Below are positions 1 to 15,966 of a stretch of 64,000 nucleotides of DNA, one piece after another. The number at the start of each line of letters is the position of its first letter. Position 1 is the first letter of the stretch. Under the pieces are notes generated by a model that saw only the letters and a program-made list of their open reading frames with translations, had not been told where the DNA came from and did not search any database. The stretch is from Phaeosaccion multiseriatum (taxonomy: Eukaryota; Protista; Ochrophyta, other classes), in NCBI GenBank assembly GCA_965112735.1, contig OZ218959.1, positions 372,001 through 436,000 on the forward strand, given 5' to 3'. Both the position numbers and the translations under genes were made by a program.

Positions 1-467
1 GCGTGGGCTGCTCGGCGAGGGGGTGCGAGAGTCGTCCGTGGGTCTCGATGGCGAAGGGTGGTGAGGCGGGCCAGCTCTCCGTCGTACGTATTGGCGTACT
101 GCCGCACCTTGCGGGTCTCGCTGGCTGCTGCTGCGGCGTGGGTTGGATCACGGGCGCCAGAGAGGGCGGTGTTGTGGAGGGGGGGGGGGGGGGGTGGGTC
201 CGACGCTGGTGGAGACGAAGTTCTTCTTGACCATGATGTCATCGATGAAGGAGAGCATGCCGGGGTGGGTGGGTGGGTAGAGCGATGGGTGGGTGGACGG
301 GTGGGTGGGTGAATGGATGGAAGGCTGGGCTGGGTGGATGGATGGATGGAAGAAGGCTGGGTGGATGGATGGATGACTAGGTGGGATGCCTTCCGTCCTT
401 TCGTTACGTGATAGACGTCTTCCTCGTCGTGTGCTCTGCCTCCTTCTTCCCCCCTGCTCCGTCCCAT
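1..467 (-). CDS. 5' part of a spliced gene of unknown function, running off the window start
   Basis: Possible exon [21 protein letters not shown] ends at a GTAACG donor. It is followed by a (TCCA)n-rich intron-like segment and then coding-like [20 protein letters not shown]. The frame breaks in a long G run near 180-195 and the expected acceptor is not a clean AG. Confidence 0.3.
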
Positions 468-659
468 GCAACAGCACGTTGTTAAGCCTGCGCCTAGGGA
501 TGAGGTAGAGCCGCCGCCCCTCCCCAACCCTTGCCAGGTACTCTTGGGAGGGTGGTTGGGGCCCTCAGCAGAACATGTCACAAGATTTGTCCATACATTA
601 CATACACACAAGCACTCACTCCTTTTAGTGGCGCACAAATTAACTTACGTAACGATGTG

Positions 660-1651
660 TTAAACGAAGTCAATTCCCAGAGAGTGTCCCAGGGGGGTGC
701 GTCCCACCTCGGCCTGCCTGGGCCCCAGAGAAGAGCGCCTTCCCCTGAGCTTGTCCACAACGCCCTGAATTTTCCACATCTCGCTCTCCACCCTCCCCGC
801 TAGAGGGGGATGTGCATGGGGCGAGGAGGGGGAGGAGGAGGAGGAGGAGGAGGAGGAGGAGGAGGAGGGAGCGAGGTGTAGATGCTGGGTGGTCTTGGGA
901 CGTCCCTCCTTGCCATGTGCTTGGAGGAGCCGTACCAGGCCCACGAAGGTCTTGCCCCTCACGGCCTTGGATCGAGAGGAGGAGAGGAGGGAGGAAGGGA
1001 GGGGATTAGTGGAGGAAGCAGAGGAGGGAAACAGACAACAGCGGGGAGACGGAGAGTGTCCGAGGGGGTGCAGCCAGCACCACTACCGCTCACCTCCGAG
1101 GCAGTTACAAGCGCCCGCCTCCTCCTGCGCTCCTCGCTGTCCCTGCGCTGCTCCGGCGACGCGAAGGCCCATGTTCCGAAGTGCTGCGCCGCTCGCAAAT
1201 GCCTCCGTAGGCCCTCCGGAGGCCTCTGCACGGTGAAGCGCACCTCCCTCGTATCGGGGAGGATGGCGGTGCACAGGCCAGCAAAGGGCAGGAGGCGGAG
1301 GAGAGTGCGGTCGAGGAAGCGGGCGTTGATTCGTCCATCTCTGAAGGCAGTGAAGGTAGCCACCCCTTCCACCTCGCTGCGCTCCAGCACGTCTGCGTAG
1401 AGGGGTCTGTAGACCTGCTCCTGCCTCTGCCCCCGCCCTTGCCCCCTTCCTCTTGGGCTGCTTGGGGCTGGCAGAGGAGCGACTCTGACCCACTCAACGT
1501 ACTGCTCCCGGAAGGCCACAGCGTGGTGGGCAAGGTCCCACAGGGGGTAGTCCCTTTCCTCTTCGGCCCCTCCCGGTCCGCCTGTTCGTTTCCGATACGG
1601 TATGCGTGTCCCCTGCACCGCCCCCCGGTGGTACACTTTTTGCTCCAGGAC

Positions 1652-9901: not shown

Positions 9902-11560
9902 TCACTCCCCCTTCTCCCCCTTCGCCCAGAACCTCTTCTTCTCGGTGGCGCCTTGGTCAAACGTCATATGCTCGGGCTTGGGCTTCTTGAGCTTCATACC
10001 GTTGTCTCCTGGCTCGAACGTCACAATCTGGGGGCACATGGGCAGGCACGTAGGGCAAGCAAGGGAGAGTTAAGGATGGTGCACGTACGTGTAAGTTGCA
10101 TCACTCTCTCGCCCACTCCCTCACTCCCACTCTCTCCGTCCTTCACCCACTCCCTCACTTAAATCCCTCACTCAGTCACTCCCTCCTCGTACTCCTCACC
10201 TCCGTGCACCAGTTGTAAATCTTGTCGCAAAAGGCCTGCATGGGGAGGATGGTGAAGGGCTCCTCCAGTTGCGTGGCCAGCTCCTCAATTCCGAACAAGA
10301 AGACTGAAATGACGGCCGTGGCGGGGATCATGGCAATGTGGTTCCAGCTGTTGCCGAAAGGCTCGTAGAGAGCAAAGGGCACGAGGAGCAGCCAGGCCGT
10401 CAAGAAGCGTGCCGTGTGGCGCGAGTAGAAGAGAGGCACGGGGCTCGTCAAGAGACGCTCGGAACTGCCCAAGTTGTCTTCGAAGATGGTGGCAGCCCTG
10501 TGGACTTCGTTCTTTCGCATGAAATGCATGGGAAGGTTCTCAATGGCCACGGACAAGTCCTGCAGGGCCCTGTTGGGTCGGTGGGCAGCGCGAACAATGG
10601 ACTCAGCCTGCCCTTCCGGCAGCTTCTGGTAAAGCTCTCTCTTGAAATCGTTTTCGTCCTCGTCCTCGGGGCTCAAGTGGCGCTTCATGCATCGCACAAA
10701 GGCCCAGGTGCAGAGCGCGAGGGTCCTCAGGTCCTCCTCGCGCTCCTCGGGGGATACACTGGAACGGTCGTACATGGCGTTTCCCAGACGGACGAGGTCA
10801 CGCGTGTGGTTGATATTCATTCCCCAGTTCTTTCGGGCCTCGTCCCAACGCTGGTACGACGTGTTGGTGCGGAACACTGTTGTGGAGAGGACAGAAGAAT
10901 GGTGAGTGGTACAGGGGAAAAAAGACGTGAAGCTCTCTCTCCCCTGATACACATACAAGGACCAAAACAGGTACATTGGTGTATGCACAAGGAACAATGC
11001 CGGAAGACGGTACAGAGGACAGAAAATAAGTACCGAGCAAAAATTGATGATGCGCACATACCGAGAAGAAGGCCCAGCGAAGGACTACTGAGAGTAAATG
11101 GGGCCAAAGGCAGCCCCAACAGAGAGGTCGAGAAGAGCGCCGTGTGCTTGACTCCTTCAAAGTCTACGAGTCCCCCCGCCAATCCGTTGAAGAGGCACAC
11201 GGCCGTCGCGACGGCCGTCGTCGTCGCCACTTCCCTACCAATATTCTTGTAGATTCCGGAGGTCAACATGCTGGAAAAGTAGTACTGGAACCGCTCGGGA
11301 GAGCGGTGCTTCCTCCAGTCATCGTGCGAGTACACAGTGCGTCGGTACTTGCGAGACTCCTCGCCGTACTGAATGTCTTTGATGGGCGGCATGACAGGGG
11401 GTGCGATTTTGGTGTTGCCCTGCAGCGCGGTTCCTGACCGCGAGAGCACAGAACCGGTCGCCTTCCCGACCCGTGTCAGCGAGGGCTGGGGCACAAAGGC
11501 GGAGCAGCCCCCTGCCAGGGTGGCTAGGCACACAGCCACTGCAGCGCTCCGCATCAGCAT
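9902..11560 (-). CDS. Plastid-targeted bestrophin-like anion channel (BST/VCCN/UPF0187), copy 1; exons 11560-11062, 10876-10200, 10027-9902
   Basis: Motifs LLLVFRTNTSYQRWDEARKNWG, SERLLTSPVPLFYSRHTARFL and LFGIEELATQLEEPF. Signal peptide with GCSA-FVP cleavage. Confidence 0.93.
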
Positions 11561-11886
11561 GGCAAAAGGGGACAGGAAGAAAATGTGCGGAGAGTTTCGG
11601 CGGCCGCGTATGTCACAGATATGTCAGTGATCATCCGAAGGCGGGGCTTACGTAAGATTGTCTCTTTCTTTCCTTCCCATTCCCTTTGAGCTTTTAATAT
11701 TTAATAGGTGTCTCGGAGGTGAGTGAGCTCTCTCAATCAACGGTTTAGTGGTAACTGGTTATAAAAATACAATAAATAAAAATCGCGGCCCCCTCCCCCC
11801 TCGTCTTTCATACCTCCGGCGCTCACCAGCCGGGGAGGGCGCGTGAAGCTGCCTGCCACCGCGCACGCGTGAAACCGTCACCATAC

Positions 11887-13663
11887 TTAGCCCGTGGTAA
11901 GCGGGCGGCTGTCCCTCTCGACCGCCATGCCCCCTGCGTCCCGCCAGAACTGATCGCTGTTGTCGTACTGGTCAGTGTTGTCGTACAGTTGGTTGCTGTT
12001 GTCGTATACGTCCGAGAGCTGTGGCCGACCGTAGTCACTGCCTGCCACTTGGCCCATATAGTCACTGCCCCCCACTTGGCCCATGTAAGCAGGAGCAGCC
12101 GCAGCCGCCCCGCCCATGAGGTCACTGCCCAAGACTGCCTGCATGTGCTCCGCCTCGGGTGGGTTGACGTGCATGCCGTTGTCATCACCGGGAGAAAAGG
12201 TTACAATCTCCGTGCACCAGTTGTAAATCTTGTCGCAAAAGGCCTGCATGGGGAGGATGGTAAAGGGCTCCTCCAGTTGCGTGGCCAGCTCCTCAATTCC
12301 GAACAAGAAGAGTGAAATGGCAGCAGTGGCGGGGATCATGGCGATGTGGTTCCAGCTGTTGGCGAAGGGCTCGTAGAGAGCAAAGGGCACGAGGACCATC
12401 CAGGCGGTCAAGAAGCGTGCCGTGTGGCGCGAGTAGAAGAGAGGCACGGGGCTCGTCAAGAGACGCTCGGAACTGCCCAAGGTGTCTTCGAAGATGGTGG
12501 CAGCCTTGTGGATCTCGTTCTTGCGCAAGAAATGCATGGGAAGATTCTCAATGGCCATCGACAAGTCCTGCAGGGCCCGGTTGGGTCGGTGGGTGGCCTG
12601 AATAATTGCCGTGGCCTGCTGCTCCGGCAGCTTCTCGTAAAGCTCGGTCTTGAATGCCTCCTCGTCCTCATCCTCGGGGCTCAAGTGGCGCTTCATGGCC
12701 CGAACAAAGGCCCAGGTGCAGAGTGCGAGGGTCCTCAGGTCTTGCTCGCGCTTGGGCTGGTTGGGGACGCCGGAGCGATCGTACATGGCGTTCCCCATAC
12801 GGACGAGGTCACGCGTGTGGTTGATGTTCATGCCCCAGTTCTTTCGAGCCTCGTCCCAACGCTGGTACGACGTGTTGGTGCGGAAGACTGTTGCGGAGGG
12901 GAGAGAAGAGAGGGATCTATCAGAAGCTGCAGAGAACCAACACATAACATCGGTGCGGACACAATACGGAGGGAAACAAAGACTGTGGCGAGACCACAAG
13001 AATAATGTGCAAGAAAAGCAGTGTGTGTGTGTACGACTGAGAGAAGAGAAGGAAGAGCCTACGTAGAGAAGAAGAAGCCATTGTAGGGCTCGAACTTGAT
13101 CGAGGATGTATCAACGATGGATATAAAAAAAGGAACAATGCCCACGTACCAAGAAGAAGACCCAGGGAAGGACTGCTGAGAGTAAAAGGAGCCAACGGAA
13201 GCCCCAGGACAGGGAAGAACGGGCTCGAGAGCAGCGCCGCATGCTTGACTCCTTCGAAATCCTGGAAGCCCCCCGTCAAACAGTTGATGAGACACACGCC
13301 CAACGAAATTGCCGTCGTCAACGAGACTTCACGACCCAGGTTCTTGTAGATTCCGGAGGCGAACATGCTGGAGAAGTAGTAGAGGAACCGATCGGGAGAG
13401 CGGTGCTTCCTCCAGTCATCGTGCGAGTAGACAGTGCGTCGGTACTTGCGAGACTCCTCGCCGTAGGAAATGTCCTTGATGGGAGGCATGCGTGGGGGAG
13501 CCATGCGAGTGTTGTCCTTGAGGGCGGTGTTGAAGAAATTTCCCTTCCCACCGCGTGAACTGACCCCACATCCAAGCCGCGGCACCGTGAGCTGGGGCAC
13601 AAAAGCGGAGCAGCCACTCGCCAGAGCGAGTAGGCAGGCGACGATGGAGGCAGCGTGCATCAT
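11887..13663 (-). CDS. Plastid-targeted bestrophin-like anion channel, copy 2; exons 13663-13150, 12887-11887
   Basis: Same bestrophin motifs and CSA-FVP leader as copy 1. Extended tail with YMGQV and YDN repeats. Confidence 0.93.
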
Positions 13664-14327
13664 GGGTTTTTCTTTCCTGTAAGCAAGAACCGCGCGCTGT
13701 GCTTGGTAAATGTGGAATAATGAATCGTCGCAAATGGCGACTACTTGAAACGTGCACTTCAATGAAATAAAAAAACGCCGCCCCGTGTATAAACAGACAT
13801 AATTAATTAAACCCCCCCCCGTCTTTTCAATTTCCTTCACCGTCCTTCCGCCTGCCTGAGCGTGGCGAAGGCGCCACCTCGCAATAAATTAATTAATAGT
13901 GTGTGTATGCAAGAAGGAAGGGGGGAAATCTGACCTATGCCCCCCCCGCCCCTCTCTCTCTCACTCTCTCTACTGCTCAAAACTTGTCCACCACATGGGT
14001 CTGAGGGTCCATTATGCGTACTTGATAGTGACCTCGTGGGTTGGCCTCGTCACGGCTCCAATCGGCTTCGGTTTGTTGTATGCTGGCTCCACCGCGTTCC
14101 CAGACAAACTGTTCACTGGTAACAACGAGATGGATGCCCTGGTTCGCTCGCCCCCCTGCTGTGGGACGGGGCCCAATGCAGGATATCTCGCTGAAGCCCG
14201 CTAGGACCGCGCTTCCTCTGGCCTCCGTCGCTGGCCCGAAAGGGAGGAAGGCGGGGATGCTCACACCAAGCTCCTGCTCGTGTGTGCGTCACCACCGCTC
14301 CCTCACCTGTTGCCATCACCAGGGGGT

Positions 14328-15966
14328 TTAACCCGTGGTCAAGGGGCGTGACTCGCTGATGCTCTCCACAATCTCTACTGGGGAGTCCTGGAATGCCCTG
14401 CCGATGGGAGCCTGAGGCTGCATCCAGACTTCGCTGTTGTCGTACACTGGCTGCTGGTACTCCGGCTGCTGGTACTCCGGCTGCTGGTACTCCGGCTGGT
14501 ACTCCTGTTGGTACTCCATGGGCTGCTGCTGAGCACCACCACTGACGAGTATGTCCCGCATGTGCTCCTCCCTGGGCAGCTTGACGGGCATGCCGTTGTC
14601 ATCGCCGGAATCGAACGTTACAATCTCCGTGCACCAGTTGTAAATCTTGTCGCAAAAGGCCTGCATGGGGAGGATGGTGAAGGGCTCCTCCAGTTGCGTG
14701 GCGAGCTCCTCAATTCCGAACAAGAAGATTGAAATGATGGCCGTGGCGGGGATCATGGCGATGTGGTTCCAGCTGTTGGCGAAGGGCTCGTAGAGAGCAA
14801 AGGGCACGAGGGCCAGCCAGGCCGTCAAGAAGCGTGCCGTGTGGCGCGAGTAGAAGAGAGGCACGGGGCTCGTCAAGAGACGCTCGGAACTGCCCAAGTT
14901 GTCTTCGAAGATGGTGGCCGCCCTTTGGATCTCGTTCTTTCGAATGAAATGCATTGGGAGGTTCTCGATGGCCCTCGACAAGTCCTGCAGGGCCCGGTTG
15001 GGTCGGTGGGTGGCCCCAACAAGGGCCGTGGCCTGCTGCTCCGGCAGCTTCTCGAAGACCTCGATCTTAAAGTCCTCCTCGTCCTCATCCTCGGGGCTCA
15101 AGTGGCGCTTCATCGCCCGAACAAAGGCCCACGTGGAGAGCGCGAGGGTCCTCAGGTCCTCCTCGCGCTCCTCGGGGGGCACACCCGTACGGTCGTACAT
15201 GGCGTTCCCAAGACGGACGAGGTCACGCGTGTGGTTGATATTCATGCCCCAGTTCTTTCGAGCCTCGTCCCAACGCTGGTACGACGTGTTGGTGCGGAAC
15301 ACTGTTGTCGAAGAAAAGACAAGAGAAGTGTTGGAAGTAGAAGAACAGGGCGGTGAGGAAGAAAGACAGAGAACATGCAGCTGTGGGGAAGAGAGAAAGG
15401 CAGTGGCCTGTGCATTTGCTCATGTACAGAAGAAGAACCAATGTGCACTTACCCAGAAGAAGGCCCAGAGAAGGGCTGCTGAGAGTGAATGGAGCCAAAG
15501 GCAGCCCCAACATGGGAAGGAACGGGCTCGCGATGAGCGCCGCGTGCTTGACTCCTTCAAAGTCAGTGTAGCCTCCCGTCAATGCGTTGAAGAGGCAAAC
15601 GAACGTGGCAATGAGCGTCGTTGCCGTGACCTCCCGACCCAGATTCTTGTAGATTCCGGAGTTGGTCGTGGAGGAAAAGTAGTAGAGGAATCGCTCGGGA
15701 GAGCGGTGCTTCCTCCAGTCGTCGTGCGAGTACACAGTGCGCCGGTACTTGCGAGACTCCTCACCGTAGGAAATGTCCTTGATGGGAGGCATGGGCGGCA
15801 CCCTCGGTCGGGTTGAGCTAAGGGAAGTTCGGCTCACCCCGTTCTTCCCCACCCGCGTGAACCCCGCCTTGCCGACTCCCCCACCCACCATGGGCTGGGG
15901 CACAAAGGCGGAGCATCCCCCTGCCAGAGTCACCAGGCACGCAGCAACAGCAGCAGTCCGCATCAT
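14328..15966 (-). CDS. Plastid-targeted bestrophin-like anion channel, copy 3; exons 15966-15453, 15301-14328
   Basis: Same bestrophin motifs and CSA-FVP leader as copy 1. Extended tail with (EYQQP)n repeats. Confidence 0.93.

Follow-up and report, generated by a model that had tools for sequence, protein, structure and literature searches.

The window analysed here, the whole of a 64,000-nucleotide stretch of contig OZ218959.1 of Phaeosaccion multiseriatum (G000:C10:372001-436000, in an assembly of 67 Mb and 22 contigs), carries three tandem bestrophin genes on its minus strand, and our subject is the C-terminal tails of the proteins that they encode. The genes span 9902-15966 and were modelled from open reading frames (ORFs) joined across canonical GT..AG introns:

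9902..11560, minus strand: bestrophin copy 1, 433 amino acids; exons 11560-11062, 10876-10200 and 10027-9902; GT..AG introns; PF25539; signal peptide ending ..GGCSAF before VPQ
11887..13663, minus strand: bestrophin copy 2, 504 amino acids; exons 13663-13150 and 12887-11887; PF25539
14328..15966, minus strand: bestrophin copy 3, 495 amino acids; exons 15966-15453 and 15301-14328; PF25539; modelled with AlphaFold2

The joined full-length proteins were used for the alignments, for the ratio of nonsynonymous to synonymous substitution rates (dN/dS) and for the tree, and single exons were used for searches and folds.

Identity and layout of the three bestrophins

The second exon of each copy matches PF25539 (Bestrophin_2) at 175-181 bits against a cut-off of 27 (E-values of 6.5e-53, 3.8e-51 and 7.1e-52 for copies 1, 2 and 3), and the first exons match weakly to positions 2-68, the start of the profile. 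An AlphaFold2 model of the second exon of copy 3 (323 residues) has a confident helical core, with a predicted local distance difference test (pLDDT) score mostly of 80-96 in the domain. Its best match among solved structures is Arabidopsis VCCN1 (7EK2; E 4.4e-9, 27% identity over about 255 alignment columns of the 323-residue model), followed by Klebsiella KpBest. Read by eye, all three proteins start with a hydrophobic signal peptide ending ..G(G)CSAF before VPQ; an ASAFAP-type motif after the signal peptide is the plastid address of red-lineage algae. As judged from sequence and model, the three copies are plastid-targeted bestrophins of the thylakoid (VCCN1) type and, by family, predicted anion or bicarbonate channels.

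The PF25539 domain ends in ..NWCTE and is followed by a conserved IVTF.(S/P)GD(D)NGM block and then by a P-x-x-EHM anchor, which is modelled by AlphaFold2 as a short helix; this helix adjoins the channel core and is kept across the family. The domains are 75-82% identical to their top homologs, which are diatom proteins of the PtBST1/2-TpBST1/2 type, the identity to P0082/P0083, which match PtBST1, being 75%. In copy 1 alone, a 172-nucleotide intron (10028-10199) falls exactly at the junction of domain and tail, between ..NWCTE and IVTF.., so that the tail of copy 1 is a separate exon, and copies 2 and 3 are continuous there. Introns that share a position show only about 50% identity between copies. 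No enrichment of CO2/cyclic AMP-responsive TGACGT/C elements was seen upstream of the three genes.

Composition, repeats and conserved islands of the tails

Past the P-x-x-EHM anchor the three proteins diverge, as a preliminary description of this DNA had claimed; all the strings that it quoted are present, the short basic tail of copy 1 lying outside the interval that it covered. Copy 1 ends ...TEKKRFWAKGEKGE, and the features of the three tails are as follows:

9902..10027, minus strand: copy 1 tail, on its own exon, 41 amino acids, net charge +2, 0 Tyr, RFW eight residues from the end
11887..12207, minus strand: copy 2 tail, 106 amino acids, 6 Tyr, 1 Trp, net charge -12
12031..12084, minus strand: copy 2 repeat of 27 nucleotides, two units, (Y)MGQV[G/A]GSD, 89-92% identical; weaker third unit at 12112-12130
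11947..12006, minus strand: copy 2 repeat of 18/21 nucleotides, three units, YDN[ST][ND]Q, 82-88% identical
11995..12009, minus strand: copy 2 VYDNS island, 14 of 15 nucleotides the same as in copy 3
11944..11946, minus strand: copy 2 Trp (QFWRD), 19 residues from the end
11887..11910, minus strand: copy 2 terminal SRPLTTG and stop (TAA)
14328..14624, minus strand: copy 3 tail, 98 amino acids, 6 Tyr, 1 Trp, net charge -12, low pLDDT after the EHM helix
14448..14519, minus strand: copy 3 array of 15/12-nucleotide repeats, EYQQ, EYQP and three EYQQP
14433..14447, minus strand: copy 3 VYDNS island
14424..14426, minus strand: copy 3 Trp (SEVWMQ), 32 residues from the end
14328..14351, minus strand: copy 3 terminal SRPLTTG and stop (TAA)

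The reported succession of motifs was recovered in full: copy 2 has YMGQV[G/A]GSD twice, then three YDN units and QFWR, in copy 3 five EYQ(Q)(P) units precede VYDNSEVW, and both proteins end in SRPLTTG directly before a TAA stop. The tyrosines of copies 2 and 3 are spaced 4-9 residues apart and sit on repeats that are visible at the DNA level, where the copy 3 array comprises 3.3 units of 15 nucleotides at 100% identity and up to five looser units of 15/12 nucleotides. Since every repeat unit in the two tails (12, 15, 18, 21 or 27 nucleotides) is a multiple of three, the arrays are in-frame minisatellite expansions, young ones where the units are perfect. The tail of copy 3, the only one modelled, is predicted to be disordered: starting at residue 251 of the exon-2 model, the pLDDT is 44-54 and secondary structure is lacking.

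The tails look like coding sequence because their G+C content at third codon positions (GC3; 0.73-0.82) fits that of the domain (0.78-0.81), unlike the G+C content of the flanks and of the one intron measured (0.47-0.63). In copy 3 the G+C content at codon positions 1, 2 and 3 is 0.65, 0.35 and 0.80 in the tail and 0.54, 0.43 and 0.81 in the domain. Together, the codon-position pattern, the in-frame repeats and the silent-only change in front of both stop codons, which is described next, indirectly support translation of the tails.

Both MAFFT and codon alignments leave two islands that are common to the tails of copies 2 and 3, namely VYDNS and the terminal SRPLTTG, and the stretch that begins with VYDNS and runs to the C-terminus has 40 residues in copy 2 and 39 in copy 3. 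Of the 21 bases that encode SRPLTTG, 7 differ between the two genes, all of them silently; among these changes are a switch of codon family at Ser (AGC versus TCA) and a change at Leu (CTT versus TTG). In a simulation, only 82 of 2,000,000 random sets of seven changes left the heptapeptide intact (p ~4e-5). Past the anchor and outside the heptapeptide, the aligned tails agree at only 18 of 67 residues (27%), and the 3' flanks of the two genes are unrelated. The silent-only differences, taken with the diverged tail, the unrelated 3' flanks and the diverged introns, argue that SRPLTTG has been kept by selection at the protein level and not by recent copying. The preliminary description had held that YDNS..W and SRPLTTG were both retained. 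This stands for VYDNS and for SRPLTTG, but the homology of the Trp after YDNS depends on the alignment, since in the MAFFT alignment FW of copy 2 falls opposite RFW of copy 1 and RAF of copy 3 and not opposite VW of copy 3, so that a YDNS..W island appears only partly secure.

At synonymous sites the three copies diverge by about 0.3 in the domain and by about 1 in the transit peptides and tails, an unevenness that could stem from strong codon bias (GC3 ~0.8) or from gene conversion restricted to the domain.

Origin and distribution of the tails

A FastTree phylogeny of the domain groups copy 2 with copy 3 and places copy 1 outside them, (c1,(c2,c3)), with supports of 0.94 and 0.92 and with the proteins P0001, P0002, P0004 and P0021 as sister group. 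On the two sister contigs considered, of 22.5 kb and 9.8 kb, P0001 and P0004 are each the sole bestrophin gene. Three of the four sister proteins (P0002, P0004 and P0021) end in basic peptides, ..RFGRFLNR, ..ARFLNR or ..RFGRFWNR, and the end of copy 1, ..KKRFWAKGEKGE, resembles these RF[LW]NR ends. The simplest reading is that the triplication is private to this lineage and that copy 1 retains the ancestral, short and basic type of tail, that copies 2 and 3 inherited the long acidic tail, VYDNS and SRPLTTG included, from a shared ancestor in which it originated, and that the tyrosine repeats expanded afterwards, separately in each of the two.

Searches at several scales returned no relatives of the long tails. 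In the 67-Mb genome, SRPLTTG followed by a stop occurs in these two genes only (0 for a reversed-pattern control), the heptapeptide without a stop is at chance level (10 matches versus 5 in the control), and paired YDN units are found in copy 2 only; a search of the genome with the two tail proteins returned each other (E 0.006-0.008) and noise, and nothing else. The whole second exon of copy 2, searched against 5.8 billion proteins, gave 851 matches, and among the best 120, in which the tails were compared, none has a counterpart of the tail, the homology ending just past the GDNG/PEH anchor. A word search with the copy 3 tail alone gave one match, to an RCC1-domain protein (E 8.6, 28% query cover, 95% identity). 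A hidden Markov model of the terminal 40 residues (VYDNS..SRPLTTG), run against 1.8 billion representatives, found only three unrelated Gly/Ala- or Asn-rich repeat proteins, two of which share QFWRDSGG by chance. It should be noted that these negatives from public proteins may leave out very near relatives and do not show that close relatives lack such tails. The long tails would nevertheless be a private, derived feature, because similar tails were not met among public proteins and the sister proteins have basic ends of the RF[LW]NR type. Taken together, derived tails on two of the three private paralogs, built by slippage and containing two selected islands, are well supported by the sequence comparisons.

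Across 115 homolog tails the median number of Tyr is 1, six or more Tyr are present in only 7%, and in acidity the tails of copies 2 and 3 rank first. Trp occurs in 17 of the 115, always once and always within the last 43% of the tail, mostly in the last 1-18 residues. As these 17 tails share the pattern, a single late Trp is a habit of the family and not special to this locus. Two further PF25539 loci in the genome, at G000:C2:3514730-3518344 (L004) and G000:C12:3175649-3178876 (L005), are divergent and multi-intron, and their ends do not resemble the long tails. Downstream of the bestrophin match on C2 lies an ORF (L004 2603-3334) that encodes a Lys/Glu-rich stretch and may belong to that gene.

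Possible role of the tails in docking to pyrenoid membranes

We consider it possible, at a probability of roughly 0.4, that the tails dock copies 2 and 3, each in its own way, to putative pyrenoid-associated structures. As set out above, an ancestor shared by these two copies gained a long acidic tail, which minisatellite slippage in frame lengthened separately in each descendant. Only VYDNS, the C-terminal SRPLTTG and the bulk properties of the tail (6 Tyr, 1 Trp, net charge -12) were kept through this divergence. By analogy with the Chlamydomonas bestrophin BST4, the tails would face the stroma and might act as paralog-specific docking or sorting modules. In these, the spaced Tyr and Trp residues could bind weakly and multivalently, and the heptapeptide at the end could specifically contact a partner in the stroma, for example a linker, a shell protein or Rubisco itself. 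Such docking would keep copies 2 and 3 on putative pyrenoid-associated thylakoids and leave copy 1 in the bulk thylakoids. What makes this reading reasonable is the combination of two experimental precedents, PtBST3 and BST4, with the constraint signal in the tails.

The disordered stromal C-terminus of BST4 (RBMP1) contains two Rubisco-binding motifs and is required for localisation to the pyrenoid tubules; BST4 binds the small subunit of Rubisco (RbcS) in yeast two-hybrid assays and a WR-to-EE mutant loses the binding. The likeness lies in a thylakoid bestrophin with a long C-terminus that is disordered there and predicted to be so for copy 3 here. BST4 has, as features of its own, a critical, Trp-containing motif of basic W-R type that binds green-type RbcS and is common to many pyrenoid proteins, whereas the tails described here are acidic and Tyr-rich, have a Trp in a context that does not fit that motif, and carry motifs private to two paralogs.

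The analogy that the preliminary description drew with BST4 proves stronger than claimed, as a Tyr-rich extension is also needed for pyrenoid localisation in PtBST3 of Phaeodactylum. Removal of its C-terminal extension (residues 407-519) abolishes pyrenoid localisation and the protein spreads over the whole chloroplast, throughout its thylakoids. The authors could not name the motif responsible. The extension is rich in Tyr and has a repeated SYLNPNP unit (Suppl. Fig. S3). PtBST3 and the proteins of this locus share a paralog-specific, Tyr-rich and repeat-bearing extension on a red-plastid bestrophin, with a sister isoform that lacks it; here the tails of 106 and 98 amino acids compare with 41 in the copy 1 paralog. 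PtBST3 differs in belonging to a divergent bestrophin subgroup, in its SYLNPNP repeat, in its end, ..PPRRLP, in having 0 Trp and in its diatom host, and by eye its extension has no motif in common with the tails of copies 2 and 3 beyond a Y-x-x-P pattern.

Other diatom bestrophins, TpBST1, TpBST2, PtBST1 and PtBST2, have the subfamily-type domain end FCDKIxxWCxEIVSW..GDNG in common with the three copies. TpBST1 and TpBST2, whose consecutive gene numbers suggest that the genes are adjacent, localise to the pyrenoid, and their last residues form acidic Tyr/Trp peptides (..MTYWR and ..EEQYY, respectively). By contrast, no Tyr occurs in the tails of PtBST1 and PtBST4, which are not pyrenoid proteins; this trend, taken from optically recognised text for six proteins, is a hint and not a rule. 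The tails of TpBST1, TpBST2, PtBST1 and PtBST2 are short (~15-30 residues past the GDNG-type block) and without repeats, VYDNS or SRPLTTG. PYCO1, a soluble Rubisco linker of Phaeodactylum, binds RbcS through a Trp sticker, KWSPR, and uses a Tyr motif, GTGYNP, for homotypic contacts, and so offers a parallel in the logic of aromatic stickers, with repeated Tyr and Trp motifs. All in all, the resemblance of the tails to known systems is one of architecture and composition, not of sequence.

The preliminary description had proposed structure predictions of the tail peptides with form ID Rubisco. We predicted the complex of the genome's own large subunit (RbcL, L014) and RbcS (L012) with the last 66 residues of copy 3, and obtained scores of 0.45, 0.48 and 0.44 (median 0.45) against 0.00 for the best of three controls, which the method grades as 'weak support'. 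At least 27% of the contacts recur between runs, the pLDDT of the partner is at least 36, and swapping out RbcL abolished the score. The pass mark of the method admits 51 of 78 solved complexes and 2 of 108 mismatched pairs, and passes at or below 0.60 comprise 5 of the 78 solved complexes plus all 4 mismatches that passed (of 180). The result may be counted as a small nudge toward contact with Rubisco. Both rbcL and rbcS match with identical scores on two contigs, G000:C18 and G000:C21 (L012-L015), presumably two copies of the plastid genome or an assembly duplicate.

Several points weigh against docking to pyrenoid structures. By the calibration of the prediction method, a pass in this range is more often wrong than right unless the contact was likely beforehand, and RbcL modelled alone exposes surfaces that are buried in the L8S8 holoenzyme. 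The Rubisco-binding motif of Chlamydomonas, reportedly [D/N]W[R/K]xx[L/I/V/A], is absent from the three tails (QFWRDAG in copy 2, RFWAKGE in copy 1, EVWMQPQ in copy 3), the copy 2 sequence departing from it by F before W and G at +4. The PYCO1 stickers KWSP[R/Q] and GTGYNP are absent from the three tails as well. Of the earlier comparison with sticker-spacer motifs, the paralog-specific tails, the regularly spaced Tyr and, for copy 3, the predicted disorder are supported. The idea that the motifs form a shared pyrenoid address fared worse: they have no counterpart in the public homologs searched or in other proteins of the genome, which speaks against a shared targeting code, and in this the tails differ from the Chlamydomonas case, where many proteins carry a common pyrenoid address. 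RbcL of this genome does not exceed 91% identity to any public sequence, and its nearest named matches are from Vaucheria (91%), followed by Chrysoparadoxa and brown algae (89%) and raphidophytes (88%). By this marker the host is an ochrophyte nearer the xanthophyte/brown-alga group than diatoms, and the diatom precedents are therefore analogies across classes. Finally, dN/dS over the whole tail is ~0.56, at a dS of ~1.2, and this value and the perfect 15-nucleotide repeats suggest that the tail outside the islands is under loose constraint and mostly young.

The alternative that survives best is that the tails are mostly neutral, low-complexity outgrowths of slippage without a targeting role, the heptapeptide serving a small unrelated need or being a lucky survivor. 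The perfect 15-nucleotide and near-perfect 27-nucleotide repeats, the dN/dS just given, the 27% identity outside the islands, the huge variation of bestrophin tails over the 115 homologs and the failure of public searches to find a tail homolog would all be expected of such outgrowths. We nevertheless regard a neutral origin as improbable, because the seven differences in the identical heptapeptide are all silent, because both tails have the same numbers of Tyr and Trp and the same net charge despite different repeat units, and because tails of this kind matter by experiment in two other algae.

Slightly less probable again is a regulatory role, in which the tails would control the channel by acidic gating or auto-inhibition, by phosphorylation of the two adjacent Thr, or by presenting a C-terminal tag to a protease or PDZ-type domain that controls turnover. 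C-terminal regions regulate gating in animal bestrophins. In keeping with such a role, the conserved element, with its two Thr, occupies the free C-terminus itself, and conservation across the family extends to the short EHM helix beside the channel core. However, AlphaFold2 gives no confident position of the tail on the channel, no kinase or PDZ motif was matched, and no precedent was found in the plastid-bestrophin literature compared. That the tails are an artefact of the gene models, the mRNAs ending or being spliced soon past the bestrophin domain, can be largely set aside, for although the copy 1 intron sits exactly at the domain/tail junction and long open frames are expected in DNA with 59% G+C, the tails show the GC3 and second-position (GC2) periodicity of the domain, which the flanks and the intron measured do not, all repeats are in frame, and the peptide right before both stops is conserved through silent changes.

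Within the docking reading, direct binding of the tails to Rubisco appears less likely than pyrenoid docking as such. An extension of that reading, which we consider unlikely though worth stating, is that this xanthophyte/brown-alga-like ochrophyte, once the private triplication had taken place, independently evolved a new address for a thylakoid sub-domain on two of its channels. A disordered acidic arm with six Tyr and a terminal SRPLTTG locked by selection would constitute this address, which would bind the form ID Rubisco matrix or its scaffold and would be a third, sequence-unrelated origin of a bestrophin-tail tether after BST4 and PtBST3.

At stake is what positions bicarbonate channels on the membranes supplying the pyrenoid in algae with red plastids. 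The locus offers a natural three-way comparison within one genome, between an ancestral short basic tail and two derived acidic Tyr tails, and with just two small conserved islands to mutate the question is directly testable. If docking is correct, aromatic-sticker tails of bestrophins would arise repeatedly and quickly by repeat slippage and would yield a compact tag with which channel placement could be engineered; otherwise, the tails are one more case of hypervariable disordered ends.

Some observations were made beside this argument. A disordered ORF (L022, G000:C9:80300-86300; ORF 50-1111, minus strand) has two copies of [RS]YAKFSY..TES, at G000:C9:80832-81011, and a late ..NTWGEADY... 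No bestrophin ORF is obvious by eye in the 6 kb around these copies, where no family scan was made, and the locus was dropped as evidence for bestrophin tails. A 272-kb metagenomic contig of another alga has four clustered bestrophins in mixed orientation, each with a different tail (L019:10001-16750); synteny with the window was rejected, as the bestrophin domains alone match and the tails and flanks do not. In the tails of P0001-P0120, Y-x-x-P and Y-x-x-x-P are enriched (z ~3.9 and 3.7) and Y-P is depleted (z -4.2) relative to composition-preserving shuffles, uncorrected for relatedness and internal repeats. Several C-terminal motifs recur in the otherwise hypervariable tails of the subfamily (..SFEEFLKSQGQ, ..RF[FLW]x[RK], ..WGQP and ..RWAAAS), and these look like undescribed short linear motifs.

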